Assembly: GCA_030704615.1 (NCBI GenBank)
Contig: CM060731.1
Span: 69,502,001-69,566,000, forward strand
DNA length: 64,000 bases
Direction: 5' to 3'
Source of the DNA: Takakia lepidozioides
Taxonomy: Eukaryota > Plantae > Bryophyta
Part shown: positions 3,680 to 46,993 of the stretch, piece after piece
How the letters are laid out: every line of letters starts with the position of its first letter
Numbering within the stretch: the first letter of the stretch is position 1
The notes under the pieces: generated by a model
What the model was told of the DNA's origin: nothing
Seen by the model: the letters and a program-made list of their open reading frames with translations, nothing else
Database searches by the model: none
Translations under genes and position numbers: made by a program

Positions 3680-3907
3680 TGAAAAGAATGAGTTGATCAA
3701 CTAACTAGAACACCAGAGGTGTGAATACATATACAACGTTTGTCACAGGGATAAGGAGAGTAGGACCACATGGGCCTTATCGCTAACTGTAATGAAGCTA
3801 TAATTACTGATGCAAATGGTGGCCAGCTACTATCTAGATTTAAGGAGCGGTGCATTAACAAAGGCCTGATCTAGCGGCATCACAACATGGGTGTGTTAAT
3901 TCCAACA
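3680..3907 (-). repeat. 3' LTR of copia-A (228 bp)
   Basis: tgaaaagaatg...ttccaaca; 6 substitutions versus 8470-8697 by manual comparison. Confidence 0.95.
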
Positions 3908-4083
3908 CCTCCTCTCACACCCATCCTCCTCTCAATACTGAACTACTCGCTTGAGGTGCTCAGCCTGCTAAGAGAGACAACACCTAGCTTCTCTCTAAGT
4001 CCTTCAAATTTCACTCTCCCCAAAGGTTTAGTCAGGATATCTGCTATTTGATCCCCGGTTGATACATGTGCAAGATCCACCAT

Positions 4084-7000
4084 TCATTGTTGTACTTGCT
4101 CTCGCACAAAATGATAGTGTACCTCGATGTGTTTTGTGCGTGCATGAAGAATTGGATTCTTTGCAATTTTTATGCTACTCATATTATCACACCAGATTCG
4201 TATGGGTTCTTCTCCGAAGTTACCTAACTCGTTGGATAGGTACTGCAACCAAATCGATTCCTTCGTCCCTTTGGCTAGGGCTCGATACTCGGCCTCTGTA
4301 GAGCTGAGAGCCACTGTGGGTTGACGTTTAGAGCACCGCGTTACATGACTACCTCCCAGTTGAAATACGTACCCTGTAGTGGATCTTCTATTTTCCTGGT
4401 CACCTGCCCAGTCCGCGTCGGTGAATCTTGTGATCTCGCTGGTTCCTTGTTTCTTGAAGAGAACCCCAAGCTCAATTGTCCCCTTCAAGTATCTGAAAAT
4501 GTGCTTAACTGCTTCCATATGAGGTGCTTGCGGGTTATTCATGAAGCGGCTAACGACACCCACAGAGTAGGAGATGTCAGGTCTCGTGTTGGTAAGATAT
4601 ATGAGCTTACCAACCATTTGCCGATATATAGTAGCATCTGCAAGCTCATCACCCATGTCAATGATAAGTTTTGTCCCTTCGAGCATTGGAGTCGGTTTTG
4701 GGTTGCAATTTGAAAGTCCAAATTGTTTGAGCATTTTGGTGATGTACCCACGCTGTGTCATGAAGATGCCCTCCCTGAGATACAAAAATTATATTCTCAA
4801 GTAATGAGACATTTCCCCCAAGTTTGTCATCTCGAATCTCTGCTGTAATTGATCTTTGATCCACTCAATTTGGACACTATCATTTCTGGTGATCAACAGG
4901 TCGTCAACATATAGCACAAGAATGACAAGTTTCTCACTTTCATTGACATAGTACATATTGTAGTCAGCATTGCTTCTGTGCATACCTTGTTCTTGGAGGT
5001 AGTTGTCGATTTTTTCATACCAAGCCCGTGGAGCTTGCTTCAGCCCATAGAGGGCTTTGTTCAACCTGCACACCTTATTCTCCTTCCCAGTGGCAATGAA
5101 CCCCTCAGGTTGAGTCATGAAGACTTCTTCTTCGAGATCCCCATTAAGAAATGCCGTCTTGACATCTAGGTGGTACATCTTCCAATCATGTTGAGCTGCT
5201 AGGGCTACAAGTGTTCGTAAGGTGCCCCACTTGACAACGGGCGCAAAGGTCTCATCGTAATCTATGCCTTCTCTTTGTTCGAACCCTCGAGCCACAAGAC
5301 AAGCCTTGAATGTATCACCTTTGCCGTCAGCTCCTTCCTTGATTTTATAAACCCACTTTGCCGTGATTGGATATTTTTGTGGCGGTAAATCCACCAAGTC
5401 CCACGTAGAGTTTCTTTTGATTGAGGCCATTTCTTGATCCATCGCAACTTTCCATTTCAGATTTCCAATTGCCTCAGAATATTTTTGTGGTTCACCAGCT
5501 TCTGCAATTGCTACGTAGTCATCAAATCGAATGGGCCGGATGATCGTTCTTCCAGACTTACGAATAGCCAGTGGGGAATTTATACCTGCTCTCGGCTGCT
5601 CATGTGCACCTGCAAGATCTTTATCATCGTCTGAAATTTCAACCCTTTGGTCTGGACCCCACTCTGGTGCGAGTGGTTCTGTCGAAGTCGTGGGCACCTC
5701 AATACCTAAAGGTGGTGAATGACATGACTCCGAGACACTTTGAGTTGAAGGATCAACAGGTGTAGCTTTGATGGGAGAAATGCAAGCTTGGTCAAGAACA
5801 AGTACAGTGGGTAGATGACAAGGTTGCAAATTGTCATTTATGATTGGACTTGGATCTGAAGAAGCACTTAAGGGAGGTGGAGATGAGGATGTTGGAAGGC
5901 TAGACATGCTCGATTCATCAAAGTGAACATCCCTTGTGATGACCACCTTTCTGCCTTGAGGACTAAAGCATCTGAAACCCTTGGTCTCCTCATCATATCC
6001 CACAAACAAACATTTCAATGACCTTGGAGATAACTTAGATGCCACGTCTTCATTGGCTATGTGAACAAAAACCTTGCAACCAAAAATACGGAGGAGTGAA
6101 AGATCTCGTTTGATACCTGAATATTTTTCCTCCGGAGTGATACCCGAGTTGGCCTTGGTTGGTGATCGATTCACCAGGTAATTTGCCGTGTTAATTGCCT
6201 CACTCACAAGAACTTGGGTAAGTTGCAAGTAAGAGCCATGCTGCGTGCTCTATCAAGCAAAGTACGGTTTTTACGTTCAGCAACACCGTTTTGTTGCGGC
6301 GTGTGAGCTTGAGTGAGCTGTCTCCGTATGCCTTCTTCATTGCAAAATTTGATGAAGTCATTTGAAAGATACTCACCCCCTCGATCAGATCATAGAATTT
6401 TAATTCTATGCCCTGTCTGATTTTCAACTTGAGCTTTGAAAAACTTGAATTTCTATAATGCCTCACTTTTCAGTCTCAAGAAATAAATCCACGTTTTTCT
6501 CGAATAGTCGTCTGTGAATGTGATAAAGTATCGAGACCCTCTCAACGAAGGTGACAAGGGGCCACAAAGATATGTATGTATGAGTTCAAGTACCTGTGTT
6601 GCTCGGTTGAGACTTTTCTTGGGGAAGCTCTCCCTGTGGTGTTTCCCATACTGGCAGCCTTCACATACACTAGATATCAGCGGCAGTTTTGGCAGCCCTG
6701 TTGCAACGACCTTGTTGCTCAAGTGAAGAAGACTTTGAAAATTAAGGTGCCCAAGCCTCTTGTGCCATATGAAAACCTCATCGATATTTTCGACCACATG
6801 CAACTCAACATTGGCGGGCTGAATGTGAAGACGGTATAGTCCTGTTGCATTATCTCTTATACCTCTAGCCACAATTTCAGGAGGCGTATTCTTAGTCACC
6901 AGCAAACACTTCTCAGAGTCAAATATTACTACGAGATTAACATCTGTCAAAGTACCTATTGATAACAGGTTCTTTGTGAGGCCTGGCACGTAAAGAACAT

Positions 7001-8150
7001 CGCTGATCTTTTTTATTTCTCCACTCGGGAAATAATTTCTTACATCACCCTTGCCACGCACAGCGTGCGATTGCCCACCGACAATTTTAACATTAGATGA
7101 CTCTGTCGGCTGTTTTATGTGATCTAGAAGTTGTGAGTTTCCAGTCATGTGCCTTGAGGCCCTTGAATCTAAGATCCATGATGTATCATCTGTTTCTAAA
7201 GCCATTGCTGCGAGTGCCGCCTCCAACACTTCATCGGCAGTCTCCGAATCGTTAATCTCGGGCTCACCTTCACTGTCATCACAAATGACATTAATTTGTT
7301 TTCCTTTGTTCTTCTCAAAGGAAGAAGTTTTATTGGAGAAGGAACTCCCAATACCTGGACATTCCCTTGCCCAATGTCATTTCTTTCCGCATTTGTTGCA
7401 GTAGCCAGGTTTAGTTTGTGAGCCAAACTGTCCGCCATCAGAGTTGAACCTCCTGTTTTCAACTCGATCGTTTCTCCGCTGCTTGAGGATCCTTCGAAAC
7501 TTGAGAACTAGGGCCTCCTCGTCTTGGGCTCGAGTTCGATTTGCATTGCGGCTCTCTTCAAGTTGGAGCCTCCCAGCTATTTCTTGGATGGTTGGGAGTT
7601 CTTTTTCGCTCGAGATAGCCTTGATGAAGCTGTCGAAACTGGCTGGCAAGGCATTGATTATCTGCTCCACGATGATGCTCTCGGATGGCAGTTCACCAAA
7701 CTCACTGAGTTGGTTGAGTGTGTCTTGTACTTCCCTCATGAAGTCAGCGACAGTCATGCCTTCCTCCATTCGTAGGTTTGAGAAACAATTTCGGATTGCC
7801 AACCTCTTGGCGTTGTTCTTGACTTCAAACTGCCTCTTCAAAATATCCCAACACTCCCTTGGTCCTTTGGCATGTAGTATGAAAGGTACAATCTGGTCTT
7901 TCACCGATAGCTTGATGATAGAAAAAGCCTTCATCCTTTGCTTTCTAAGAACATGATTAGCATCTCTAGGATCGGGCAAGAGCTCAGAGACGGAGCTAGT
8001 GTCGGCGGAGCTACTGCCTTCCTCCGGTTGTACTATTTCCCAAAGATCCTCGCGTTCAAGGATACTTTGTATCCTGAACTTCCACATGGCATAGTTTGAA
8101 GCTCCTTCAAGCTTCTGGTTCTCACCTATGGAGTGCTCTGTTCCTGACAT
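4084..8150 (-). pseudogene. copia-A gag-pol polyprotein, interrupted
   Basis: ORF pieces 7377-8150 (gag; zinc knuckle broken, CNKCGKK*HW), 6453-7229 (protease, pre-integrase), 4789-6228 (integrase end, RT) and 4084-4785 (RT, RNase H). Confidence 0.93.
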
Positions 8151-8469
8151 ACTGTTGTTCTACGAAGTGATATACACTACAGCAAAAGAAATAAATAAAT
8201 ATAGTAAGTGTTTACAGATCAATAGCTTACACTAATCTACTTTCAGCATAAGAAATGCTATGAAGAACTAAGAGAAAGAAAGCAAACTACTTTCGTGTAG
8301 CCTCTCCACGACGTCCCAGTCCAGGCTTGACCATCTTCTTCCTTGTTTCTCTACGAAACCAAAAAAATGCTCTCAGATATCCTCCTTAGACTCTAACCGT
8401 ATAGGTCTTGAAGGTACCCTCAAAGATTCATGACTACCCGTGTAGTCTACTATCCTCGCTCTGATACCA

Positions 8470-8697
8470 TGAAAAGAATGAGTTGATCAACTAACTAGAA
8501 CACCAGAGGTGTGAATACATATACAACGTTTGTCACAGGGATAAGGAGAGCAGGACCACATGGGCCTTATCGCTAACTGTAACGAAGCTATAATTACTGA
8601 TGCAAACGGTGGCCAGCTACTATCTAGAAATAAGGAGCGGTGCATTAAAAAAGGCCTGATCTAGCGGCATCACAACATGGGTGTGTTAATTCCAACA
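8470..8697 (-). repeat. 5' LTR of copia-A (228 bp)
   Basis: Directly abuts the PBS (gctctgatacca on the + strand, 8458-8469). Confidence 0.95.
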
Positions 8698-8726
8698 TCT
8701 TCTAGTTCCAGTCAGATCTCACCGGT

Positions 8727-11415
8727 GCTATGGAGTAGGTGATGCTTTTCCACCCTCCATTCACAAACAATGAACATGAGCTAAGATTCCTAAAGGCTGG
8801 TGCCATGACCTAGAGGGATGATTCATCTACATAATCGGCTTTTGGGATGAGGATGTCATACCAAAATTGCAAGCAAGAAGGTTTTGAATGACAAGCATCC
8901 AAAGTGGTGTCATGAACATATATATATCAAAGAACCAGAAAGAGGACACAGACCCTCTGAATTTTTGTGCTGTGGCCAAGAATGGCAAGCGCCGGAGGAG
9001 AGAAAAGGTGGAGACGCGCCACCTTCCCTCTTCCTTCAATCCACTATCTTGAGTGCGTGGGCGTGTCTCAGTCTTCTCTCTCTTCTCTTCTTCTTTATGT
9101 AGGAGCCCATTTGTGGGTACTACTAAAGCTGGCATCAACTCCCTCTGCAATATGCTTAGAATTGACCACTCCGTTTGTCATGTCCATGTCATTGATTGTT
9201 AGGATTTAAAGTACCGAGGTGAATTTGTTTCTCATTAAGGCAGTGATTGATCAGCGATCGAAATTGAATTGAGATTTCCAGTACAATGTCTGGATCTAGC
9301 TCACAGGTCAGTGTTGCAGCTGACAAGACGCACTCTGAGCTCCATGCCAAGCGAAATACGAACGGGGGAAGGCCTTGCACAAAGGAAATATCAGTGCCTG
9401 TATTTTCGATCGCCAATATTATAGGCAGAGGCGGGCGTACCTTGAAGGCTATGCAGATGGAGCCAGGCATTATCCTGGTGTCAGTGATTCAATCCAACCT
9501 GAACGTTGTCAAAGTCATTGGGAGCAGAGATGCGGTCGAGAGGATTTCTATTAAGATCCAGGAGCTGATCTCTACCTCTGAGACAGGTACCGGCAATTGT
9601 ATGTACTGATCAATAACCATTCGCAAGGTGAATTTGATTGCTTGTGCACGCACATAGCATTTTCTAAAAGTGCTGTGGCCCATATACATTCCAGGGAGAT
9701 ACTATATGCGCCCACGAGGAAGGTTCGAAAATGGCGCTCTCTCTCGCCGACCTCAGGTGCCTATACATGAAGAGGTGGTCGAAGTGCCTAGCTTTTGTAT
9801 TGGCGAAATCATTGGCAGAAATGGACGCAATATCAAGTCCCTGCAGCGGGAGCCTGGAATTACCTCGGTTGTAGTTATTGGATATCCACAAAATGTGGTG
9901 GTGATCAAAGGCTCTGACATAAATGCCGTCGAAAGAATCTCTGCTTCGTTGAAGCAAAAGTTGGATGCATTCCTTGACTTTACTGTGACTTGCTTCAATA
10001 GCTTCTTTTCACGGCCCTGTGGCCCCCCGTCTAATGTGATGATAAAGCTTCAACTGTCTTCTGGAAGCACACGACGGTTATCTAGGAATAATGGGAGAGC
10101 TTTTGCGTTCCAGCAGATCATGTTCTTCTTTCACAGCTCGATCTACCAGTGCACTAGTGATTTAGCCACGGGTGACGCCTCCGACAGTTCTCATAAATTT
10201 GCTAGGTCCCAGGGTGACGAGGATGAAGTAGAAAGCGAGACAAACAGCTGGTTCGCTGCTCAATCTACACAACCTCGAGCTCCTGCTAGTAACCGCGGGC
10301 CTGTAGTAACCTTTATTACCGCCCCAGACTGGAAGCAGGCTAACTATGGAGGTGTGCTTCGACAGTGTCTGATATCGGCAACGACCACTGGATTACAGAC
10401 AGATCAGTCTCAACAGCGTGGGGGTGTTGATGTTAGGGTGGTAATGGGCGTTGGCAAGTGCTTTTTCCAGTGTGAAGGTAACATTTTACAGTCTGAAAAC
10501 GATATGGGGAGGAACGTGGTATTAACGATTCCCGAGCTGAACAATCTCTTTCTACAACAACGCTTACGGCATCAGTTCAAATCTGGAAACCCAGACATAT
10601 TTGCAAAGATGCATCAACGTCTGAACAGTGGAGGAACTTACGTTAATTCGCGGATAGCTCGCACAATCTCCATCTCCTTTGTAGATAATGGAAGAAAACA
10701 GCGGTACCGCATCTCCATCCCTTGGCCTAGAAATACTCCTGTGAACTCAAGAAATATCATAGATGAGAATTACGTTGGCACGTCCGGCCCTTCTCTGCCA
10801 TTCTCAAATTCCAGTTCAGATTCAGAAGCCGCTCAGGACAGAGTGGGAGAGCTGTTGTTAAATAGCAAGTTTGAGATAATCAAGAAGAACCACGGATTTG
10901 TATGGTTTCTCCGCGAAGGGAACAACAGCAGCGATTTCAGATTGACAATCGAAAGCAGCGCCCGACAGGGAGCAGATTCTCTGCGGCCTGACAAAGAAGT
11001 AGTGGATTGGATAGAAGAGGCATACGGAAATAAGACTACAAGTGGATACCTTGCGTTCCCCAATCATCCTCGATTTGTATGTCTTGTCACTCGCTACAAG
11101 GAGGTAGAGACATACGCCAACCGAGATTTCAAAGTGAGCATCAAGAAGGTGATCGCGGCATCAGGTTCCAACCACCCATCCTCTAAATGGGAGGCAACCG
11201 TCCAGAGCTGGCGAGTGAGGAGATCACTGTGCATGAGAGAGAGGGAGTTGGTGGCCGCTGATGTGGACATGATTATGCCCCACATCGATGCCCTCGTTGC
11301 AGAGGCAGCGAAGCTCACGCGCATCAAACCCTTCCATCGTCATTCAACAGACTAGTCTTTGAGACTTCCACATTCCAGGGACAATAATTTCTCGTGCACA
11401 ACATCATAACAATGC
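8727..11415 (+). repeat. Segmental duplication, copy 1 (paralogous to 17871-~20730)
   Basis: Similarity starts at gctatggagtagg (8727 vs 17871) and runs through the upstream region, both exons and just past the copy-1 stop. Confidence 0.93.
9286..11355 (+). CDS. Tandem-KH-domain protein with an uncharacterised (putative CYTH/triphosphate-tunnel-like) C-terminal domain, copy 1; exons 9286-9586 and 9695-11355, ~653 aa
   Basis: KH1 EISVPVFSIANIIGRGGRTLKAMQ and KH2 VEVPSFCIGEIIGRNGRNIKSLQ both carry GxxG loops; AG|GTACCG donor and ttccAG acceptor are phase-compatible and conserved in copy 2 (an alternative in-phase donor lies at 9599). Confidence 0.8.
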
Positions 11416-11589
11416 TCAGCAAAAGCAAGTCGATCTGCAGATGATATGAAGAACAGTCGGACTTTATATTCCCTCCACAACGCAACAGCTACCTGCCTTG
11501 AAGAGTGCATCTTGGACCTGCAACTGTCACCATGCACAACATTCTTCGTCTTTTTCTTCATAATCAGAGTAGATGGTAGACGCTTCATG

Positions 11590-13174: not shown

Positions 13175-16100
13175 AACTCCCTCTCAAACCACAATTATAG
13201 AATTCTAGTTTGGATCTCTAACTTCTTGCAAACTCCTCAGGCCTACTTCAAATCTACACTTCTCAAACTTGAGTCTTCCTAAGATATTAGACTTCTATGT
13301 GTTTAGTTCTAGCATGAAAAACAGGGTTATGCGCTATCTTAATGCAACTTTGATTATCACAGTACATCTGAATAGGCGCCCTTGCGTCTGCAAGACTCAA
13401 TTCTTGAAGCATTCGCTTCAGCCAAACAGACTCCTTGGTGCTATCTGATAATGACCTATATTCAGCCTTTGTCGATGATAAGGCAACAGTTGGTTGACGT
13501 TTACTCAGCCAGCTAATTATGGGTCCTACTCCCAACTTGAAAATTGATCTTCTGTTGTCATAGTTCCCAGCCCAGTCGGAGTCGGAATATCCGTTGATGA
13601 TATTAGAGTCACATCTCAAGTACATGATTCCCAAATCAATTGTTCCTTTGAGGTATCTCAATATGTGCTTCACTACTTCGAGATGCGTTTCCTCAAGCCT
13701 CTCCATGAATCTGCTTGCTACTCCAACTGCATAACTGATGTCGGGTCTAGTATTGGTAAATAAAGAAGCTTCCCCACCATTCTTCGATACATTGTTGCAT
13801 CTACTGCTTCTGTTCCCATATCTGCTGCTAACACGAGTCCCTCTGCCATGGGCGCTTTGCTCGTTCTGCAGTCCTCCATGTTAAATTCTCTCAACGTGTC
13901 CATGATGTAGAGCTTTTGCCCCATGAATATCTTTTTGTCAACATGGGTAAACTCTACCGAGATATCTGCTCAGTTGGCCAAGGCTAGACATTTCAAAGAC
14001 ACTCTCGAGTTGGGTTTGGAGCCAGCTAATCTTGGTAGTATCCCTACCAGTCAACAATAGGTCATCCACATAGAGTGCTAGAATGACTGTTTTGCCATCC
14101 TCATTGAAGAAATAGAGATTACAATCTGATTCACTTCTGTCGAGACCCTGTGCTCTCAAGTAGGTGTCTATCCTCTCATGCCAGGCTCTTGGAGCATGCT
14201 TCAATCCGTACAATGCTCTTCTTAACCTGCAGACCTTTCCTTCTTCTTCTGGCTTGATAAATCCATCAGGTTGCATCATATACACTTTCTCTCTCAACTC
14301 CCCATTTAAAAAAGCGGTCTTCACATCTAATTGATTGATCTCCCATCCCTCATGAGCAGCCATGGCAATAACGGTTCTGATTGTCGCCCATTTTACCACT
14401 GGGGAAAACGTCTCATCATAATTCAAACCCTCAACCTGTTGGAATCCCCTAGCCACAAGCCTTGCCTTTAATTTTTCAGGCTTTCCAATTGATCCCATCT
14501 TTATCTTGTACACCCATTTTGTTGTTATGGGTTGTTTCCCCGAAGGAAGATCTACCAACTCCCACGTTTTGTTTTTAGCGATCGACTCCATTTCAGAGTT
14601 CATAGCTTCTCTCCAGCCTCTATTCACAATCGCTTCTTCAAAGGTTACGGGTTCCTGCTCTTCTATGGACATAATGAAGTCAGTGTACCTCTTTGGTAGA
14701 CATTTCTGTCTTGTTGATTGCCGTGGCACATTCTCCTCAATATTCTCCCTTGAGTGTACTTGTATTTCTCTCGAGATGTTGCCACTATCCAACAAAGAGC
14801 CATCATGCATCAAAGGTGATGTCACTCCTTGCATCGTCTCAATTTCACTGTCAGAAAACCCTTCAGATGCATCGGTGTTTCCATCATTTGACAAAACACG
14901 CTCTTGTATTGTAGCAGGTGATGCAAGAAGCTTAGTTTTCAAGTCATCTTTCATTTCCCCGAAGACAAACTGACTCATTTCTGTCGGTCCTTGTAGTGCA
15001 TCAGCGTCATTTGCCCTAAATCCAAACTGGACTCATTGAATCTGACATCCTTGCTAATTTCAATGATTTTCTTCTTTGAATAGAACAACCTGTATGCTTT
15101 GCTTTGCTCTTCATACCCTACTACAAGGCATCGCTGGGACTTGGATTGAAGTTTATTTCTCTTATTTTTGGCAACATGCATGAATGCCTCACAACCCCAG
15201 ACTCTCAAATGGTCTAGCCGAGGTTTCTCGCCCGTAAGCTTATGGATGGGAGTCGTACCTTGTTTGCATGAGTAGGAAGTCTATTGGCCAAATAGTTTGC
15301 CGCATTCACAGCCTCTGTCCAAAGATAATCTGGGAGTTTGCTGGGTATAAACATGCTCTGAACATTTTCCAACAACGTTCGATTCTTCCTTTCAGAAACT
15401 CCATTTTGGTGAGGAGTATATGCTTGTGTCAACTCCCTCTTAATCCCATGTTCTCTGCAAAAATTGACGAAGGCCGATGATATAAATTCACCTCCACAGT
15501 CTGATCGCAGCGCTACTAGCTTCTCCTTGGTCTGATTTTTGGCAAGTAGCTTAAACTGTTTCAATTTCTCCAAGGTCTCTGACTTCTTCTTGAGAAAAAA
15601 TATCCAAGTGAATCTGCTATAATCATCAGTGAAGGTAGCAAAATACTTAGAATTGCGTAATGATGTTGTTGGCAATGGTCCACATAGGTCAGTGTGAACC
15701 AACTCGAGCGGCCTGTTCGCCCTTCTTGTGCTGATTTTCGGAGCTGACTCTCGGACTTGTCGCCCTGCCATGCAATGTTCATAGGTTTCATCTAGGTCAT
15801 CAAGCGTTGGCAACCCTTCTGCAATATTTTGCTTTTTCAGTAGCTTCATGTTCTGAGAGCCTAAATGCCCCAGCCTTTGATGCCACAACATGACTTCCTT
15901 CTCTCTCGATGACACAACATTTACTTCTATTTGCTGTATATCCATCTTAAAGAGACCATTTCTAGGATCACGAATCCCTTTTGCTACTATCTGTTTGGGC
16001 CCATTTTTGGACATTACTAGACATCTATGCGAATCAAACACAACGATGTGTCCGTTGTCCGCTATAGATCCGACTGACAACAAATTTTTGGTCAGACCCG

Positions 16101-17728
16101 GTACGTAGAGAACCTCGTCAAATCCTTTTCATTCCTGAAGAGGTTACAAATGTGGCTTTGCCTTTGCCTTTCACAGTGTGAGTCTGCCCTCCTGCAGACT
16201 TCACACGTCCATCATTCACAGAGGCCTCAAAATTGTCCAAACTATTTTTCTTTCCCGTCACATGTTTGGATGCCCCTGAGTCAAAGTACCACGGGCTTCC
16301 ATCGTGAGTTTTCTCTATCTCAAGAGAGGCCACTGCCATTTCAAACAGATCAGATCCCTCTTCAATAGATTCCTTGTCTTCATCACTTGATTCAGTTTGC
16401 ACGATGTTTGCAACTTGCTTCCCTTTTGCCTTGGTGCTATAATTTGTTTGATGTGGTTTCTTCCCCATTTCTTTTTGGTTAGTGCACTCACGGGCCCAGT
16501 GACCTGGTTCTCCACAATTGTAGCACTTGTCAAGCCTTGGCTTGGTCGACCTATGCTCATCGTTCATTTTGCATAGCTTCTTAAACTTCATGATCAAGGC
16601 CTCCTCCTCAACCTTCTTGGTTCCCTTCAGCTCCCTCCTAGTTTCTTCGTGATGGATTCGAGTCACAAGCTGGTCAAGTGTATGAAATTAGTCCCTACTA
16701 GAGATGCTTTGTATGAATGACTCATAGCTCTACCTCTCATAGCTCTCAGGTAGAGCATTGAGTATCGCCATGACGATATCTTCATTTGGTATGACATCTC
16801 CCATCGCTAGAAGCTGCTGGTGCAGATACTGCACATTTCTTAGGTAGTCAGATACACTACTACCCTCAGTCACCTTGGCACTATACAACTGATTCCTGAT
16901 CAACAGTCTTCTGGCTGGACTTGCTGAGGCAAACAAATTTTCTAGCTTGTTCCAGACTTGACGGGGATCATCAATCTTAGATATGTATGGTATGATCTCA
17001 TCTTTCACTGAAAGATTAATCATGGCGAGTAGCCTCTGCTTCCTGCGATTTGTGAGCTCCGAGTCATCCTCCGGCTCTGTGTCGGTGACGATATTCCAGA
17101 GATTGTCACGAACGATCAAATTCTTCAATCTGAACCTCCAAGTCTGATAATTGGCTACTCCCGCCAGCTTGTTGACTTCAAAGATAGCTCCCTCACTACC
17201 TCTTGTCATTCTCGACGAGTGTGGAATTTCGAGTGCTTTGAGCGTCGTTCTCCTTGTAGGATTAGTCACCTTTGACTCCTGAACACCACGCTCTTCCACT
17301 GAAATCTCTGAAGTCATGACCGTAGACACTTGTATCTATCTGTAAGCTAAGGATCAAATGGCTGGCTCTGATACCATGTTACAAAACTCAGCAACATAAA
17401 GCTCAAGCTTTACTATAATAGATCTCCACAAGAACGGTAATATGAGACAGTGACTTACAGGTCTTATATCGGTTACCTCACCTACCTATGTTTACAGCAT
17501 GCAGTGTGCTAATAACTCTATCGGCTTAATTTCTATCTACCCAGTTGTCTCTTTCATTGATGACTAACTACTTTACAACAAATCTTGCTGACTCTAGTTC
17601 TATTTGTGTTACATATAACCCTGACTTTATAGTTACAGATCAGGTGGTTTGTTATTCTACAAAGTGCCATTTTGCACTTCTTCAGTGCTCAGCATACATG
17701 ATCGTCCCCCTGCAAATTCACTACAACA
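13175..17728 (-). mobile_element. Second, distinct degenerate Ty1/copia element (copia-B); 3' LTR missing
   Basis: PBS gctctgatacca at 17365-17376; LTR starts at 17377, with the outer end uncertain (~17728 ..ctacaaca, or 17580); gag 16730-17329; CYNCGEPGHWAREC knuckle; WYFDSGAS protease; integrase 15214-16083; RT 13938-14978; RNase H 13287-13706; PPT at 13177-13187. Confidence 0.93.
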
Positions 17729-17870: not shown

Positions 17871-20730
17871 GCTATGGAGTAGGGTGTTGCTTTTCCACCC
17901 TCCATTCACAAACAATGAACATGAGCTAAGATTCATAAAGGCTGGTGCCGTGACCTAGAGGGAAGTTTGGGATGAGGATGTCATACCAAAATTGCAATCA
18001 AAACCTGAGGTCTTGATTGACAAGCATTCAATGTGGTGTCATGAATATATATATCAAGGAACCTGAAAGAGGACAGAGGCCCTGTGAATTTTTGTCCTCC
18101 TAATGACAGTTCCCTGGAGTGCATTAAAAGTCAAGAATGAGCTTCAGGGATGCAAGCTAAAAAAGCATCAATTTAAATGATATCTAACATTGTCAATATA
18201 CAGCCTACTTGGTGAGGCTTGGCCAGAATGGGAAGTGGCGGAGTGAAAAGGTGGCGACGCGCCACCTTCCCTCTTCCAGCTTGTATCCACTATCTTGTGT
18301 GCGTGGGCGTGTCTCAATCTTCTTTCTCTTCTCTTCTTCTTTATGTAGGAGCCCATTAGTGGGTACTGCTACAGCTGGCAACTCCCGAGCTGCAATATGC
18401 TTAGAATTGACCACTCCGTTTGTCATGTCCATGTGATTGATTGTTAGGATCCAAAGTACCCAAGTGAATTTGTTTCTCATTACGGTAGTGATTGATCAGC
18501 GATCGAAATTGACTTGAGATTTCCAGTACAATGTCTCGATCTAGCTCGCAGATCAGTTTTGCAGCTGACAAGTACGCTCATTCTGAGCTCCATGCTAAAC
18601 GGAATACGAACAGGGGAAGGGCGTCTTGCATCACAAAGGAAATACCAGTGCCTGGATTTTCGATCGCCAATATTAGGCGTGCCGAGAAGGCTATGCAGAC
18701 GGAGCCAGGCATTATCCTGGTGTCAGTGATTCAATCCTCCCTCAACATTGTCAAAGTCATTGGGAGCAGAGATGCGGTCGAGAGGATTTCTGTTAAGATC
18801 CAGGAGCTGATCTCTGCCTCTGAGAAAGGTACCGGCAATTGTATACTGAATATTCATTTGCACACCAATGTAAGCGCCCCTGTAGTAAACTTTGCTTAGA
18901 ACTACTACCTAGTGAGCGGCAGGGAAAGCTACTTACGAGAGCCGGTACATCATGGAATGTAAGTACATGCAATCTTGATCAGTCATCTGGATAAATCACG
19001 CACTGAAAGGTAGCGTGTATTCTGTACTCAAGCTTTCAAGGTGAATCCAGAAGCTCAGCATCATCATGATCTTGATTGCTTGTGCACGCACACAACATTT
19101 TCTAAAAGTGCTGTAGCCCACATGTATTCCAGGGAGATCCTATATGCGCCCACGAGGAAGGTTCGAAAATGGCGCTCTCTCTCGCCGACCTCAGGTGCCT
19201 ATACATGAAGAGGTGGTCGAAGTGCCGAGCTTTTGTATAGGCGAAATCATTGGCAGAAAGGGGCGCAATATCAAGCCCCTGCGGCGGGAGCGTGGAATTA
19301 CATCAGTGGTAGTTTTTGGATATCCACAAAATGTGGTGGTGATCAAAGGCTCTGAAAGAGATGCCGTCGAAAGAATCTCTGCTTCGTTGAAGCAAAAGGT
19401 GGATGCATTCCTTGACTTCACTGTGACTTGCTTCAGTGATTCCTTGTCACGACCCTCTGGCCCCCCGTCTAATGTGATGATAAAGCTTCAACTGTCTTCT
19501 GGAAGTACACGAGGGTTATCTAGGAATAATGGGAGAGCTTTTGCGTTCCAGGAGATCACGTTCTTCTTTCACAGCTCGATCTGGTTCGCTGCTCAATCTA
19601 CACAACCTCGAGATCCTGCTATTAACCGCGGGCCTATAGTAACCTTTACTGCGCCAGACTGGAAGAAGGCTAACTATGGAAGTGTGCTTCGACAGTGTCT
19701 GATCTCGGCAACGACCACTGGACTACAGACAGATCAGTCTCAACAGCGTGGGGGTGTTGATGTTAGGGTGGTAATGGGCGTTGGCAAGTGCTTCTTCCAG
19801 TGTGAAGGTAACATTTTACAGCCTGAAAACGATATGGGGAGGAACGTGGTATTAACAGTTCCCGAGCTGAACAATCTCTTTCTACAACAACGCTTACGGC
19901 ATCAGTTCAAATCTCTAAACCCAGACATATTTGACAAGATGCATCAACGTCTGAACAGTGGAGGAACTTACGTGAATTCAGGGATAGCTCGCACAATCTC
20001 CATCTCCTTTGTAGACAATGACAGAAAACAGAGGTACCGCATCTCCTTCCCTTGGCCTAGATATACTCTAGTGAACTCAAGAAATATCAGAGATGAGAAT
20101 CACGTTGGCACTTCCGGACCTTCTCCGCCATTCTCAAATTCCAGTTCAGATGAAGCTCAGGACAGAGCACTGAGAGAGCTGTTGTTAAATAGCAAGTTTG
20201 AGATAATCAAGAAGAACCACGGATTTGTATGGTTTCTCCGCGAAGGCAACAACAGCAGCGATTTCAGATTGACAATCGAAAGCGGCGCCCGACAGGGAGC
20301 AGGCACTTTGCGGCCTGACAAAGAAGTACTGGATTGGATAGAAGAGGCATACGGAAACAAGACTACAAGTGGATATCTTGCGTTCCCCAATCATCCTCGA
20401 TTTGTATGTCTTGTCACTCGCTACAAGGAGGTAGAGACATACGCCAACACAGATTTCAAAGTGAGCATCAAGAAGGTGATCGGGGCATCAGGTTCCCACC
20501 ACCCATCCTCTAAATGGGAGGCAACCGTCCAGAGCTGGCGAGTGAGGAGATCACTGTGCATGAGAGAGACGGAATTGGTGGCCGCTGATGTGGACATGAT
20601 TATGCCCCACATCGATGCCCTCGTTGCAGAGGCAACCAAGCTCACGCGCATCAAACCCTTCCATCGTACTAATCGTTCGGACTTGCACATTCCAGGGACA
20701 ATTTCTCGTGCACGACATCATAACAAAGCT
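17871..20730 (+). repeat. Segmental duplication, copy 2
   Basis: High identity to 8727-~11415, with indels including a longer intron and a 105-nt in-frame deletion. Confidence 0.93.
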
Positions 20731-20748
20731 CATTACGCTCGCCGATGA
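18531..20748 (+). CDS. Tandem-KH / putative CYTH-like protein, copy 2; exons 18531-18828 and 19133-20748, ~637 aa; KH1 GxxG loop deleted
   Basis: Both exons are open with phase-1 splice sites conserved; KH2 IIGRKG is intact; KH1 reads SIANIRRAEKAMQ. Confidence 0.78.
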
Positions 20749-34604: not shown

Positions 34605-35774
34605 ATGTTGGAGGCCGAAGTGTCTTCTTGCGTGATTGCCAGCCATGGCAAGCAAACGGATAGGCAATCTCATAAAGAGTTGAGAGGGACTGGGGCTGGA
34701 AGGAGCCGTATGAGGTACTCACGGAACTCAATACGGGGGGCTGACTTCGACGTTTATGCCAAGTACCTCCCCATTGGTCCTCTTGGACGTGGCGCATATG
34801 GTGATGTGTGTGCCTTCACGAACTCAGAAACAGGGGAAAAGGTTGCAATAAAAAAGATCGCTAACGCGTTCCAGAACAACATGACTGCCAGGCGCACGCT
34901 TCGAGAGATCTTGCTTCTCCGGCACACGAACCACGACAACATAGTTCCCATCAGGGACATCATTGTGCCAGCAGCTATCGAGGATTTCCACGATGCTTAC
35001 ATTGCAAATGAGCTTATGGACACAGACCTGCATCAAGTGGTGCGAACAACGAAACTCGATGAATATCATTGCCAGTTTCTGCTGTACCAGCTGCTCAGAG
35101 GCCTGAAGTACATTCACTCAGCCAACATCCTGCATCGTGATTTGAAGCCAAGCAACATTCTTATCAATTGCAATGACTGCCTGCTTAAAATTTGTGATTT
35201 TGGTTTGGCTCGAACTTCATCGGAGGACGAATTTCTCACGGAGTATGTGGTCACCCGACCATACAGAGCTCCTGAGCTGCTCCTTGGAAGCCGGATGTAC
35301 ACAGCGGCTGTGGATATGTGGTCAGTTGGCTGCATTTTCGTGGAGATGCTGACAGGACAACCATTATTTCCGATCCGTTCGAGACAAGAGCATCCTGTCA
35401 ATCACTTGAAGCTAATCACTGAGCTCTTGGGAACACCTGATGACTCGGATCTATCTTTTCTGCAAAACGCAGATGCTCGCCAGCGGATACAGAGTGCGTT
35501 GGTAGGGCAAGAACGGAAACCTCTGGCTTCCAGGTTCCCTCAGGCAACATCTATTGCATGGGACTTGGCTGAGAAGATGCTGCGGTTCAATCCTTCCGAG
35601 AGAGTAACCGCTGAGGAGGCGCTGGCGCACCCCTACCTCTCAGAACTGCATGATGTTAACGATGAGCCCAGCTGCCCTTTGATGTTTGATTTTGACTCTT
35701 ACCTTCCCAATCTCACGGTGGAGCACGTGAAACATCTCATCTGGAGGGAGGCTACTGCATTCAATCCTTTGTGA
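34605..35774 (+). CDS. Mitogen-activated protein kinase, TEY type, intronless CDS, 389 aa
   Basis: [38 protein letters not shown], and CD docking motif LHDVNDEP. Confidence 0.97.
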
Positions 35775-42547: not shown

Positions 42548-44324
42548 AGCCTACTCCTTCATCAACACCCAGTCCTGAAGCTCTCAAATCATGCCGCACT
42601 CAGCATTTCTCCACAACCCAAATGCAATTTATGATCGTACTCGTGGGTCAGAAGCAGCCAATTTCTTATGGACCGCGTCACCGCACACGCCCGCCAAATG
42701 ATTTGCACCAGAAGGCAAGCCTGGTTGAGGTCCTTTACCAGTCAGTTCAAAGCTCATTGTTTGGCCAGCAACAGTTGCTCTTTACAAACTAAAACTTCGA
42801 CCAAGGAAAGATTGGAGCGATAAATAAAGTTTCCCAATGCTCTCCACACACAACGGACACCACATCTTCCACTCCTGAACCTCGTGCTTCAGGACCTGGA
42901 CCCAGGGAGAAATGATTCCAAACCCAAGGAAAAAATGCTTTATTATTTAAAAGATTCTTTCGCCCAGGTTCCGAGAAAGCGACGAAGCGACTCTATCCAC
43001 GGCCAGTCTCGGGACTCGGGAGAGATTAGGTGCGGGGTGAGGTCCAGGAAGCTTGGTTGGAAAGGCCCAATTCGAACCAGCTTCAATCTTCCAACACCTA
43101 CCTAGCCTAACTTAGTTGAATGATCAAACTGCAACTTGAACCTTGAAGCTGGATGAACTGGGCATTGCGGAGCCTGGTGGTGCAACTGTTTATTGCATGT
43201 CCAAGTGCACGAGGTGGGCTGCTACCAAAACATATCTTTTAAGTAGTTCTCTGCCATTCTTTGGTGATGATGGCAGCGTGCTCGGGCGTGGGGCAGATCA
43301 TGCATTTGGACTCACATCATGCAGCAGCAGGGCTGTGGAGCTGAAAGCCGCATATCCCTTTGCAATGCGCCAAGTACTGAGCCCCTTGCAAGTGGTGGCT
43401 TCAGGGACGTAATTTAAGGTATTGACACGAAGAATTTGGATGTTGGTTTGGGGGGGCCGTCGTTGTGTAGGATCTGCGTTTGAATTATTTTTTGACGTAT
43501 CCGGCAGAAACTAATCTAACGCAGTCAAAGAGCACACAGGATGGTCACACGACGGCTAGAAATGACACTTTCCCCTCTTGAATCTTTTGGTGTATCTAGC
43601 ACGTAGGTCAATGCTGGAGTATGGAACGGCTCTGGCAGAAGTTCTTCAAAATATCCTTCACAGTGGTGGGACTACCTAGAATCTCTCTTTCTACTGAAAA
43701 AGCTTCTCTTACTGTCAGTATCATAGGTTGTTCTTGTGAAGCAGAGCATAGCAGTACGACGCCCAAGGTCTTCTCCCTCGAGTTTGCAAGGTACTTGGAG
43801 AGTTGATGGTTTCGGCTTGTTCGTAGCAAGCCGGGGTCAATACTTTGGCTGCTCAGCTGCATTCTGGTGGATTTGACATCCAGTCGAAGTTCATCTGACT
43901 ACAGACAGAAGCAGCACGCACAAGAGGTTGTTTGGACTGAGGGTTGTTGGAATCCTATTTGGGTCAATGAAATGCTCTGCTGCCATGACACCAGGTCCAG
44001 CACAATGTGGTGAGGGCACCTTCTTGTGTTTCTTGATTTGTCCTTATCAGATTCATCCCTACTGTTTCATCATGGGTTTTGTCAGCTAGCTTGTCGGGTG
44101 CATCTCTGGTGGTATGGAGTGTTGTTGACATGTTTCTGCCAATGGGATTGCAGGCAGATATCCAAAAATCAAAAATGTAGGGAAGGAGAAGCTTTGGAAA
44201 GAATATTTTTCAAGCCCCAATCAGTGGTGGGACAGAAAGGTGAATGGCTGTTATGGAATCTAGTGTGTTGTAAGTAGGGTGGAGAGTTGGTTATATTATT
44301 TTTGGGGTTTGTTATTGTCAACAG

Positions 44325-46993
44325 CTAGCAGCAAAAGAGAAGCTGTAAGCAGTATCCTTATTGAGGCAGGGGTGGAGTGTGGTGCAGACCCAACTGATAA
44401 AAAAAGACGGGAATTCGAGCATAATGCTACCAATGACGCACGTTGCATTGATAGCTACAAGAAAGTTGTATGCGTAGATGGACAACTGGAAGCAGCACCA
44501 CCACTGTTCATAGCATCAGGCACCTCCACTACGGCCACTGATTCTGAAAGAGGACCAAGAGAGATCTCCTCTGGCATTTGTGGGCATGTGAGGACACTAT
44601 GTGAGGCAGGACACCTGAAAGAGGCTCTGCAGTATTTGAACCAAGGAGGCATTTTGGCAGATTCCTATACTTATGTCTGTCTCTTGCACAAGTGCACCAA
44701 GATGAAAGACCCAGAAGCGGGAAAGCAGGTGCATACCCACATCATACAAAGTGGATTCAAGCCAAATGTGTTTCTACACAACACCCTTCTCAACATGTAT
44801 GTCAAGTGCAGAAGCATTGTGGATGCATACCAATTGTTTTGCAGAATGCCTGAACGAAATATGTTTTCCTTTACTATAATAATGGCAGGATATACCAAGC
44901 ATGGGTGTGGTAAGAATGTCTTGGAGACCTATGAGCAGATGATACAGGAACAGGTGACGCCTGACCAGGTCACATTCATTTGTGTTCTCAAGGCATGTGC
45001 CAGCCTGGCAGCTCTTGAAAAGGGCAAAGAGGTCCATGCTGATATCATGAAAACAGGAATTGTACCCAATGTCATCCTGTACAATACCCTCATGAACATG
45101 TATGCCAAATGTGGGAGCATTGAGGGTGCAAAGGGAGTGTTTAACACCATGGCTGAACGAAATGCGGTGTCATGGAGTGTGATGATTGCAGGATATGCCC
45201 AGAATGGGTACGCAATAGAGGCTTTGAAGACCTATGAGGAAATGCTGCGGGAAGGGGTGATGCCCAACCAGGTCACGTTTGTTTGCATTTGCAATGTATG
45301 TGCCAGCCTAGTAGCCCTGGAAAAGGGCAAAAAGATCCATGCTGATATCATAAAAGCTGGAATCGTGCCAAATGTCATCTTGGACACTACCCTTGTGGAC
45401 ATGTATGCCAAATGCGGGAGCATTGAAGATGCAAAGTGTGTGTTCGATAATATGGTTGAACGAAATGTGGTGTCATGGAGTGCGATGATTGCAGGGTATG
45501 CCCAGCATGGGTGTGCTATGGAGGCTTTGCAGACCTATGAACAAATGCTGCTGGAAGGGGTGAAGCCTGACCAGGTCACATTCGTTTGTGTTTGCAATGT
45601 GTGTGGCAGCCTAACAGCCCTGGAAAAGGCCAAAGAGGTCCATGCTGCCATTGTGAAAGCTGGAATCATACCAAATATCATTCTGGGCACTGCCCTCGTA
45701 GACATGTATGCCAAATGCAAGAGCATCAACGATGCAAAGAGAGTGTTCAAATATATGGCTGGAGGAGATGTGGTATCATGGAATGTGATGATTGCAGGAT
45801 ATACCCAGCATGGGTGTGGCATGGAAGCTTTGGAGACCTATGAGCAAATGATGCGGGAAGGGCTGAATCCCAACCACGCCACATTTGTTTGCATTTGCAA
45901 TGCATGTGCCAGCCTGGCAGCCCTAGAAAGGGGCAAAGAGGTCCATGCTGACATGATGAAAGCTGGAATTGTACCAGATGTCATTCTGCAGACTGCCCTT
46001 GTGGACATGTATGCCAAATGCGGGAGCATCGAGGATGCAAAGGGAGTGTTTGACAACATGGCTGAACGAGATGTGGTGTCATGGAGTGCGATGATTGCAG
46101 GATATGCCCAGCATGGTTGTCATAGGGAGGCCCTGCAACTATTTGAAGGAATGCAAAAGGAAGGCTTGAAGCCAGACAGTATCACCTTTTTGGGGGTTCT
46201 CTCTGCATGTAGCCATGTTGGTCTAGTGGATGAAGGCAGACACTACTTTGAGTCCCTGAGTCAAGATCATGGCCTCACTCCTACAGTTGAACACTTTGGC
46301 TGCCTGGTAGACCTTCTTGGCCGCATAGGGCGATTGAATGAGGCAGAGGACTTCATAAACAAAATGCCAATCAAACCAGATGCTGTGGTGTGGAAGGCCT
46401 TGCTTGGTGCTTGCAGAATTCATGGAAATGTGGAGGTGGCAGAACGTGCGGCAAAATGTATTCTTAAGGGGGATCGACAGGACATTGCAACTTATGTGTT
46501 GCTCTCGAACATTTATGCAACAGCTGGCCAGTGGAATGATACTGCAAAGGTGAGGAAAATGATGATGGTCAAAGACGTCAGAAAGGAGCCAGGTCGCTGC
46601 TGCATTGAGGTTGGGAACAGGGTTCACACTTTTGGTGTAGATGTCAAATTGCATCCAGAAATGGAGGAAATCAATGCTGAGCTCAGAAGATTGTCTCTGC
46701 AGATGAGGCAGGTAGGGTATGTGCCTGACGTGCCCTTGGTATTGCATGATGTGGAGGAGCGAAAGGAAATTGTCCCTTGCCACCACAGTGAGAAGCTGGC
46801 CATTGCTTTTGGGCTGATCAGCACGGCCCCTGGCACACCTCTCCGTGTTGTCAAGAACCTTCGGGTCTGTGGTGACTGCCACACGGCAAGCAAGTTCATC
46901 TCGAAGATTGTTGGGCGAACAATTGTTGTACGGGATGCCAACCGCTTTCACTGCTTCGAAGATGGAGTTTGTTCTTGTGGGGATTACTGGTGA
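44325..46993 (+). CDS. PLS-class PPR protein with E1/E2/DYW deaminase domain (organellar C-to-U editing factor); N-terminus probably on an unresolved upstream exon
   Basis: 17 PPR motifs in L-S-P triplets ending P2-L2-S2; PG box KEPG; HSEKLA; CGDCH; C-terminal CSCGDYW. The ORF start at 44279 is GTG with no in-frame ATG before the first PPR; a likely acceptor caacAG ends at 44324. Confidence 0.95.

Follow-up and report, generated by a model that had tools for sequence, protein, structure and literature searches.

The window, a stretch of 64,000 nucleotides from Takakia lepidozioides, contained a two-exon gene on the forward strand at 9286–11355 (copy 1) and a duplicate of it downstream on the same strand, at 18531–20748 (copy 2). 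The first exon of copy 1 (9286–9586) carried the start codon and a first KH domain, and was delimited by a Pfam KH_1 match, the open reading frame and a GT donor; its membership of the mRNA is putative. It was followed by a putative phase 1 intron of 108 nt (9587–9694), read from the sequence and the frames of two ORFs, with GT at 9587 and AG at 9693–9694; comparison of the sequences showed that both donor and acceptor were preserved in copy 2. The second exon (9695–11355, approximately 1.66 kb), defined by a 561-codon ORF, encoded a second KH domain and a triphosphatase-barrel-like domain and continued to the stop codon. Spliced lengths of 653 codons for copy 1 and 637 for copy 2 were obtained by arithmetic, the exons having been searched separately and never joined. 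Two small RNA runs with the same species label lacked the sampled words and contained nothing on 9200–11450, which is no proof of silence. Judged from its sequence, and under this putative splice model, copy 1 is probably a functional gene encoding a protein of about 650 residues.

Both KH domains of copy 1 scored above the Pfam KH_1 (PF00013) cut-off of 21.5 bits and possessed a GXXG loop, the characteristics of type-I KH domains. The first (approximately 9379–9561, forward strand; GRGG) scored 29.4 bits in the ORF at 9286–9606 (E = 6.6e-7), while the second (9772–9939, forward strand; GRNG) scored 32.7 bits in the ORF at 9670–11352 (E = 6.5e-8) and was also located in alignment A1; the two GxxG KH domains of the original prediction were thereby confirmed. 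They were 50% identical to one another (E = 5e-15) and, by this measure, derive from an internal duplication. Gymnosperm homologues of the gene (described below) have a single KH domain, and its counterpart in alignment A1 was the second KH domain of copy 1. To describe the mature protein as 'tandem KH' may be wrong, since the exon encoding the first domain has evolved no more slowly than upstream DNA (90.7% identity between the copies, against 90.1%) and an ATG at 9706 would yield a product with a single KH domain, as in the gymnosperm proteins.

The copies lay between Copia elements in TE-dense surroundings, in agreement with an earlier description of the locus as a TE-dense island. Directly upstream of copy 1 was a Copia-type LTR retrotransposon on the reverse strand (3680–8703), with LTRs at 3680–3913 and 8470–8703 and gag, RT and integrase ORFs at 4084–8150; a second Copia-type element with RT and integrase (13938–17329, reverse strand) was situated between the two gene copies. 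The duplication that had been reported here was recovered as a block in which 8727–11418 matches 17871–20732, and the left end of this block adjoined a Copia LTR. Carriage of the gene as cargo of a TIR transposon was considered and dropped, because inverted repeats of at least 25 nt were absent around either copy.

Sequence comparison showed that exon 1 of copy 2 (18531–18828) still encoded the first KH domain, but that its GXXG loop had been deleted (IIGRGGRTLK to IRRAEK). The putative intron (18829–19132) kept GT...AG and was approximately 200 nt longer than that of copy 1. Exon 2 (19133–20748), with the second KH domain and the barrel, was 84% identical to copy 1 by BLASTP; it had undergone an in-frame loop deletion of 35 codons, and its C-terminal tail was altered following a deletion of 13 nt close to the stop codon. 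Copy 2 thus appears to be a decaying duplicate. The loss of the GXXG loop, the 35-codon deletion and the altered C-terminus would also suit a bleaker interpretation, namely that both copies are unexpressed, decaying pseudogenes among Copia elements, with frames left open through recent duplication; the absence of the stretch from the two small RNA runs, the TE-dense setting and a first KH exon conserved no better than flanking DNA all accord with this. The second exon argues otherwise. Its DNA was 94.3% identical between copies, compared with 90.1% for upstream DNA and 74% for the intron, and all indels within it were in frame, save at the extreme end. Frames of more than 530 codons were still open in both copies at a Ks of approximately 0.10, and Ka/Ks for exon 2 was 0.50, synonymous changes significantly exceeding the neutral expectation (p = 0.002). 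This showed that purifying selection had operated between the two copies. Since residues invariant in the wider family were also retained, at 22–30% identity to gymnosperm proteins, the pseudogene explanation is considered improbable.

An exhaustive phmmer search with the window protein returned seven matches, those to the gymnosperm family at E = 9.5e-13 (the best) to 2.1e-10; when the query was run through a word-indexed homologue search, whether as the protein or as alignment A1, the result was blank. A follow-up search seeded with a gymnosperm member raised the family to 19 members. The taxonomic range, which the original prediction had proposed to establish by profile search, therefore included Ginkgo (Gb_07235), Cryptomeria (SUGI_1196440, SUGI_1196470 and XP_057840871), Taxus (KI387_019085) and Picea (cDNA-derived proteins, e.g., B8LLG2). 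These proteins are unnamed and combine KH and barrel domains, sometimes with a J-like insert, which in conifer members is placed within a barrel loop. There were at least six copies in Ginkgo, and paralogues were clustered in Cryptomeria. Alignments A1 to A3 ran colinear from the KH domain through the entire barrel, with the invariant DFR, RYK, ETY and WE motifs retained in the window protein; relative to gymnosperm members, the window gene carries one more KH exon and lacks the J-like insert. On this evidence the window protein is homologous to the gymnosperm family. The weakest phmmer match, P0007, was situated on metagenome contigs, where neighbouring ORFs had no Pfam match.

The combination of KH and barrel domains is not, then, unique to the window; the same architecture occurs in gymnosperms, and databases contain look-alike shapes among plant DUF7903, fungal DUF7905, SLS1 and KH proteins of oomycetes and cnidarians. 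The claim of a new system could not be upheld for these reasons. The literature search did agree with the accompanying statement that no characterised plant protein of the KH-plus-tunnel type was known, in that no paper on one was found.

The barrel domain of copy 1 (9970–11319, forward strand) comprised approximately 450 beta-rich residues, began directly after the second KH domain and matched no Pfam family; its extent was set from phmmer, alignment A2, models of a homologue and of the protein itself, and Atlas features. A beta-rich C-terminal domain had previously been placed at approximately 10426–11330; the domain is real, but it starts at about 9970, the earlier start corresponding to the first barrel strand. 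Two inserts within it (approximately 10140–10250 and 10730–10860) were poorly modelled and are probably disordered. Proteins with a TTM/CYTH-like fold form a tunnel from an antiparallel beta-barrel of some eight strands, flanked by helices (PMC8233210); such a barrel was found by modelling in the homologue and was indicated for copy 1 through homology, a weak model and Atlas features. The AF2 model of the homologue, a member of the gymnosperm family (P0002:85-453), had a pLDDT of 74 and a pTM of 0.76. When compared with the PDB by Foldseek, it matched RESC1/2 (E = 4e-11), Pct1 (2e-8), Trypanosoma cruzi Cet1 (1e-7) and yeast Cet1 (4.5e-7). VIA-align gave Z = 21.0 against RESC1, with 270 residues aligned at an rmsd of 3.8, followed by yeast Cet1 (Z = 16.5), Pct1 (15.5), T. 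cruzi Cet1 (15.1) and the mimivirus enzyme (10.5); Mediator Med18/Med20 (Z = 8.5–9.3) and CYTH enzymes (Z = 8–10) were also matched. A Cet1/CYTH-like fold had been called by eye, with a structural comparison proposed as its check, and the comparison made with the homologue model returned a tunnel barrel of the Cet1/RESC type. The seven sequence blocks on which the call was based all fell, in order, on beta strands predicted in the homologue model, the pairing with Cet1 being that given in the original prediction. As modelled, the gymnosperm family has a Cet1-like triphosphate-tunnel fold.

For copy 1 the fold rests mainly on homology at 22–30% identity, because the protein's own model was poor (pLDDT = 50.5). 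That low-confidence model nonetheless ranked RESC, Cet1 and Pct1 at the top (RESC2, Z = 8.6; Cet1, Z = 7.4), and an Atlas feature search with the copy 1 protein placed mRNA_triPase/DUF7903 clusters first (0.93; 191 of 256 features in common). Homology, the weak model and the Atlas features together support a shared tunnel fold in the copy 1 protein. Sequence searches returned less: neither the copy 1 protein nor 20 relatives matched Pfam mRNA_triPase or CYTH at E values up to 10; the PDB yielded matches to KH domains alone when searched with the copy 1 protein, and nothing relevant when searched with the family profile. The DUF7903 HMM (gathering score 26.5 bits) gave a sub-threshold match to a single Cryptomeria member (E = 0.1, 11.9 bits) and none to the copy 1 protein. 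A two-copy complex prediction for the homologue barrel scored 0.00, which speaks neither for nor against dimerisation.

The catalytic hallmark of TTM proteins is a metal-coordinating N-terminal ExExK, located on the first barrel strand (PMC8233210). The corresponding strand in copy 1 (VRVVMGVGK, 10432–10458, forward strand) was identified by its position after an N-terminal helix and within the Cet1-aligned range, rather than by residue-level superposition. Here, gymnosperm members read V-K-L-I-I-R-F-G-K and both window copies read V-R-V-V-M-G-V-G-K, such that ExExK has become KxIxR in the gymnosperm family and RxVxG in the window, where both glutamates and the lysine are missing. The loss of metal ligands that had been predicted was therefore borne out for ExExK; with the motif reading KxIxRFGK in gymnosperms and RxVxGxGK in the window, a metalloenzyme is probably not what copy 1 encodes. 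The last barrel strand (KWEATVQSW, 11185–11211, forward strand; RWECxLSSR in the family), located from the alignments and strand table, carries one family-conserved glutamate, E408 in numbering from 9970, flanked by non-acidic positions. Catalytic members of the superfamily bear a second acidic motif on the last strand (ExE; E494/E496 in Cet1), and E408 is possibly the counterpart of a motif-C glutamate of Cet1, its register against Cet1 being inferred.

Family-invariant acidic residues occur on the strands (D242, E236, E294/E296 and E324 in P0002 numbering), and tunnel-fold enzymes are chemically diverse (PMC8233210), so that the protein could be imagined to retain catalysis, as a phosphohydrolase or a nucleotide cyclase employing other acidic residues of the tunnel. 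Against this, the ExExK required for metal coordination is missing and Pfam profiles for mRNA_triPase and CYTH found nothing at E values up to 10; in Cet1, a point mutation at any one of E305, E307 and E496 abolishes activity, and RESC1/2, in which two of the three metal-binding glutamates are missing, have been judged inactive (PMC10201420). Retained catalysis is accordingly rated highly improbable. The interpretation preferred here, with moderate confidence, is that copy 1 is a functional gene whose product joins the KH domain(s) to a Cet1-like tunnel domain without ExExK and acts as a non-catalytic RNA binder.

Such a protein would hold single-stranded RNA through its KH domain(s), while the barrel may either clamp a phosphorylated RNA end (5'-ppp or 5'-pp) in the manner of RESC2 or serve as a docking scaffold. 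The model for the former is provided by RESC1/RESC2 (GAP1/GAP2; PDB 8cdp, 8fn4 and 8fn6), the best structural match to the family model, in which RESC2 binds the 5'-triphosphate of gRNA within an inactive Cet1-like tunnel (PMC10201420). The RESC1 alignment covers the whole domain, including an N-terminal beta-hairpin extension that is missing from Cet1, and both RESC1/2 and the plant family combine a Cet1-like barrel with the loss of most metal-binding glutamates, so that inactivity is presumed. At 12–14% identity, however, there is no detectable sequence homology between them. [quoted passage not shown] Binding of 5'-ppp RNA was demonstrated for RESC2, while its extension to the plant protein would be by analogy.

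The distribution of basic residues bears on this analogy in both directions. With tunnel-lining residues assigned from strand alternation alone, four basic residues on polar strand faces (R244, R291, K293 and K304, P0002 numbering) were invariant, window protein included, and alignment of the C-terminal half showed nearly all family-invariant residues to be present in the window protein. Elsewhere, eight invariant or near-invariant basic strand residues of the gymnosperm proteins, about half of the family's set, were lost from the window protein (R118G, K179N, R183A, K185T, R206P, R222E, R306S and R330W in P0002:85-453 numbering), which weakens the case for triphosphate binding by copy 1. That its barrel binds RNA 5' ends is consequently a tentative suggestion, and a doubtful one; the same property is somewhat likelier for the gymnosperm relatives, because these retain many more basic residues on polar strand faces. 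The same losses would be in keeping with a barrel that is a structural or protein-docking module without a phosphate ligand, leaving all RNA contact to the KH domain(s). Med18/Med20, which have the tunnel fold and are not known to bind phosphate, would be the precedent, and the J-like insert in the conifer barrel loop hints at protein-protein interaction. Yet RESC1/2, Cet1 and Pct1 (Z = 15–21) are far closer in structure than Med18/Med20 (approximately Z = 9), and the four basic residues and one glutamate are invariant throughout the family. A purely docking role is rather unlikely on this evidence.

If the barrel did grip 5' ends, RESC2 would be a precedent for a tunnel that reads 5'-ppp RNA, and the tandem or clustered paralogues here and in Cryptomeria, like the number of copies in Ginkgo, could recall a sensor of such RNA that evolves fast and acts against viruses or transposons. 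The original prediction had spoken of a fast-evolving defence-type gene, a description that fared badly. Ka/Ks was 0.5, and not greater than 1, and so gave no sign of positive selection; copy 2 shows decay; the window showed neither partner domains nor neighbours of a defence type; and the window protein has a degraded set of basic tunnel residues. TE neighbours, for their part, are usual in large plant genomes. A sensor of this kind is thus very unlikely.

As a probable non-catalytic RNA binder, the window protein can be set beside several other groups. Cet1-like RNA 5'-triphosphatases (Cet1, Pct1, T. cruzi Cet1 and the mimivirus enzyme; PF02940) have in common with the family the tunnel fold, strand order, a strand with paired basic residues (RYK) and a last-strand glutamate; the plant proteins differ from them in adding an N-terminal KH domain, extra N-terminal strands and loop inserts, and in lacking ExExK. 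In plants, mRNA capping relies on an enzyme of the cysteine-phosphatase type. The occurrence of tunnel triphosphatases is usually limited to viruses, fungi and protozoa (PMC10201420). The superfamily fold is present in the plant CYTH-type proteins AtTTM1, AtTTM2 and AtTTM3 (Z of approximately 8), but these belong to the CYTH branch and are not Cet1-like; their barrels are much shorter, they have no KH domain and they are far weaker structural matches to the family, although AtTTM1 and AtTTM2 likewise lack ExExK (PMC8233210). Among ESM Atlas shapes, those nearest to the KH and barrel family were two uncharacterised Pfam families, DUF7903 (TM = 0.72) and DUF7905 (TM = 0.71), over approximately 320 residues. 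DUF7903 (PF25475, Streptophyta), which was mentioned in no paper found by the literature search, also supplied the Atlas clusters nearest to the window protein by language-model features, and some of its clusters partly match PF02940; unlike the plant family, its listed clusters have no KH domain. In fungal DUF7905 (PF25482), about 10% of the members of one cluster carry KH_1. Yeast Sls1p (SLS1_N, KH_SLS1 and SLS1_C) joins KH domain(s) to a similarly shaped domain (Atlas TM = 0.67 over 309 residues), a likeness in the shape of a cluster representative only. Sls1p is a mitochondrial inner-membrane protein that binds mitochondrial RNA polymerase, and takes part in the expression of genes whose primary transcripts lack a cap (PMC2896726). 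Its mitochondrial, membrane-bound state sets it apart from the plant proteins, which, as read from their sequences, begin at the KH domain and have no obvious presequence.

A broader view would unite these proteins as an old, patchily retained eukaryotic class that reads uncapped RNA 5' ends, in which the body of the RNA would be held by the KH domain and its 5'-ppp or 5'-pp end gripped by a dead triphosphatase tunnel. Its members would be the gymnosperm and seedless-plant family, the oomycete and cnidarian KH proteins, DUF7905 and Sls1p, together with plant DUF7903 and trypanosome RESC1/2, which lack KH; the plant targets would be uncapped transcripts, whether organellar, Pol IV/RDR-derived or viral. 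This generalisation is speculative and, as a whole, unlikely to be correct.

These results show the presence in land plants of a Cet1-like barrel that lacks its metal site and is fused to a KH RNA-binding domain, where the usual description limits Cet1-type tunnel triphosphatases to fungi, protozoa and large DNA viruses. No inactive tunnel protein other than RESC1/2 is known to bind the 5'-triphosphate end of an RNA. The window gene is a diverged and possibly weakened member of its family, and the Ginkgo and conifer proteins are for this reason the better test subjects. For the unnamed proteins of the KH and barrel family, for DUF7903 and DUF7905, and perhaps for Sls1p, the comparison offers a testable idea, that they may recognise uncapped RNA ends.

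The predicted product of the gene at 9286–11355 (copy 1) was a KH protein whose barrel was Cet1/RESC-like, with a triphosphate-tunnel fold, and lacked ExExK, the metal-binding hallmark motif of catalytic tunnel enzymes. Two forward-strand ORFs were present, the first at 9286–9609 with an ATG start and the second, of 561 codons, at 9670–11355; Pfam placed a KH_1 domain above the gathering score in each (E = 6.6e-7 and 6.5e-8 respectively) and found no other family in either. The first ORF runs for 301 nt up to 9586, followed by GT at 9587, while the second frame picks up at 9695, after AG at 9693–9694. These putative splice sites and the frames of both ORFs predict a 108-nt phase-1 intron that joins them, and by arithmetic a spliced gene of 653 codons; the two exons were searched separately, rather than as a joined protein. 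The KH domains were 50% identical (E = 5e-15), which indicates an internal duplication. The mature protein may have two KH domains or one: the exon for KH1 was no better conserved than flanking DNA, and an alternative ATG at 9706 would produce a single-KH layout, as in relatives.

A word-indexed homologue search returned no matches. Exhaustive phmmer searching with the post-KH region (9970–11352) produced seven matches (best E = 9.5e-13), and a search seeded with one of these recovered 19 proteins. Family members were uncharacterised proteins from Ginkgo biloba (at least six genes), Cryptomeria japonica, Taxus chinensis and Picea sitchensis, together with many Logan and JGI contigs of transcript length (1.5–2.3 kb). 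In all relatives a single KH domain at the N-terminus preceded the same stretch of approximately 350 residues; their identity to the window protein was 22–30%, and the alignment was colinear all the way from KH domain to C-terminus. A subgroup from conifers and Taxus (P0001, P0004, P0038 and P0040–P0043; e.g., L001:10001–11706) carried a DnaJ-like insert (PF00226, E = 1e-7 to 1e-5) in the loop between the barrel halves, where the window protein had a serine-rich insert instead. The tripeptide HPD is usual at one position of J-domains; in the alignment this position read FDQ, FDN, FDS or FH, and the insert may therefore not stimulate Hsp70. The sole intron of the Cryptomeria gene lay inside this insert. 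Two Cryptomeria paralogues of 538 and 530 residues (L001:10001–11706, forward strand, and L001:18499–20171, reverse strand) were approximately 7 kb apart, showing that clustered paralogues are not peculiar to the window. The weakest match, P0007 (E = 8.7e-4), was confined to the C-terminal half of the barrel and came from ENA metagenome scaffolds (L002:6001–6621 and L003:831–1451) that are probably of eukaryotic origin; ORFs adjoining it had no Pfam match.

The AF2 model of the window protein's post-KH region was poor (pLDDT 50.5 overall, with only the C-terminal third at 70–83), while a gymnosperm homologue (P0002:85–453) gave a usable model (pLDDT 74, pTM 0.76), consisting of a helix, then a series of long strands in antiparallel order, and finally a long helix at the C-terminus. 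Foldseek comparison of the P0002 model with the PDB placed the trypanosome RNA-editing substrate-binding proteins RESC1/RESC2 first (E = 4e-11), then S. pombe Pct1 (2e-8), T. cruzi Cet1 (1e-7) and yeast Cet1 (4.5e-7), followed in order by mimivirus triphosphatase, Mediator Med18/20, E. coli YgiF, and CYTH and thiamine triphosphatases. By VIA-align, RESC1 scored Z = 21.0 (270 residues aligned, rmsd 3.8, model residues 1–369), yeast Cet1 16.5 (model 85–369 against Cet1 279–539), Pct1 15.5, T. cruzi Cet1 15.1, mimivirus triphosphatase about 10, and CYTH enzymes including Arabidopsis TTM3 8–10. The window's own weak model had the same proteins on top, with values that are marginal alone (RESC2 Z = 8.6, Cet1 7.4) but consistent with the other results. 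An independent search by language-model features, with the window sequence as query, ranked plant clusters with mRNA_triPase (PF02940) and DUF7903 highest (scores 0.93 and 0.92; 191/256 and 188/256 features shared). The original prediction, which had recognised a Cet1-like fold by eye, was thus supported; its seven paired blocks were in the correct order and all on strands, these being the two properties checked. The start it proposed, 10426, is the first barrel strand, while the domain itself begins right after KH2, at about 9970.

In Cet1, metal is bound by E305, E307 and E496, and the gamma-phosphate is contacted by R393, K409, K456 and R458 (PMC10201420). The first barrel strand read V-K-L-I-I-R-F-G-K in the family and V-R-V-V-M-G-V-G-K in both window copies; on this sequence both ExExK glutamates appear to be gone, with the register against Cet1 inferred. 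The predicted loss of metal ligands was borne out in the window copies, and it is very improbable that the window protein is an active enzyme. The last-strand glutamate (WE motif) was conserved family-wide. Gymnosperm members had many invariant Arg/Lys on polar strand faces; by P0002 numbering, the window protein retained equivalents of R235, R244, R291, K293, K304, R322 and E324, and eight family Arg/Lys were replaced (R118G, K179N, R183A, K185T, R206P, R222E, R306S and R330W). Which of these residues would face the tunnel was inferred from strand alternation.

The block at 8727–11418 was repeated at 17871–20732. By comparison with copy 1, the second copy (forward strand) has exons at 18531–18828 and 19133–20748, separated by a putative intron (18829–19132) with the same GT and AG; this intron contained approximately 200 extra bases (18845–19071) without counterpart in copy 1. 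DNA identity between copies was 94.3% in exon 2, 90.7% in exon 1, 90.1% upstream and 74% in the intron. The KH and barrel protein was under moderate purifying selection: exon 2 Ka/Ks was 0.50, with 34 synonymous and 59 non-synonymous differences, a significant synonymous excess (p = 0.002), and exon 2 proteins were 84% identical. Copy 2 appears to be a duplicate in decay; the GXXG loop of its KH1 was deleted, a 35-codon stretch was absent from a loop, and a 13-nt deletion close to the stop codon altered the tail.

A reverse-strand Copia-type LTR retrotransposon occupied 3680–8703, its gag, protease/integrase and RT ORFs split over several frames. Its LTRs (3680–3913 and 8470–8703; at least 234 nt) were 97% identical, and the right LTR stopped 24 nt short of the duplicated block. 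A second Copia element lay at 13938–17329, and no terminal inverted repeats were found around either gene copy. Elsewhere in the window, a 389-codon ORF with an ATG (34605–35774, forward strand) specified a protein kinase domain that was complete (Pkinase, E = 3e-68), and its exact sequence had no match in the protein collection. A long intronless forward-strand ORF (44279–46993; first ATG at 44702) encoded a PPR protein with an E motif and, at its C-terminus, a DYW deaminase domain (PPR_2, E = 3e-87; DYW, E = 7e-39), the type of an organellar C-to-U RNA-editing factor.

Atlas shape searching with the P0002 model matched DUF7903 proteins of Streptophyta (TM 0.72), fungal DUF7905 (0.71), KH proteins of Cnidaria (0.69), fungal SLS1 proteins (0.67), KH proteins of Oomycota (0.63) and capping-enzyme beta subunits (0.55); a feature search with full-length P0002 again returned DUF7905 and the KH clusters of oomycetes and cnidarians. 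Hence, the layout is not unique to the window gene, and the proposal of a new system was not supported, since KH and barrel already occur together in databases across eukaryotes, albeit unnamed. The family did not reach Pfam thresholds for DUF7903, mRNA_triPase or CYTH, and a literature search turned up no publication dealing with DUF7903 or with a KH protein that also has a triphosphate tunnel. Inactive Cet1-like tunnels are a known kind: RESC1 and RESC2 are without two of three metal glutamates and were judged inactive, and the RESC2 tunnel accommodates the guide RNA's 5'-triphosphate nucleoside (PMC10201420). The window gene's product would be another, distinguished by its fusion to KH and its occurrence in plants.

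Such a protein would bind RNA without catalysis, with single-stranded RNA bound by its KH domain(s) and with its barrel either clamping a phosphorylated 5' end in the manner of RESC2 or serving as a docking scaffold, as in Med18/20. Recognition of RNA 5' ends, as originally proposed, is plausible and has a solved precedent in RESC2; the accompanying suggestion of a defence gene was not supported. Sls1p, which resides in the mitochondrial inner membrane and binds mitochondrial RNA polymerase (PMC2896726), acts, like RESC1/2, where primary transcripts retain a 5'-triphosphate; the parallel is suggestive, but no more than that. For gymnosperm proteins the 5'-end clamp is attractive; for the window protein it is rather unlikely, because half of the basic residues are lost. 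The window gene is a diverged, possibly weakened member of its family, which makes its gymnosperm relatives better suited to experiments.
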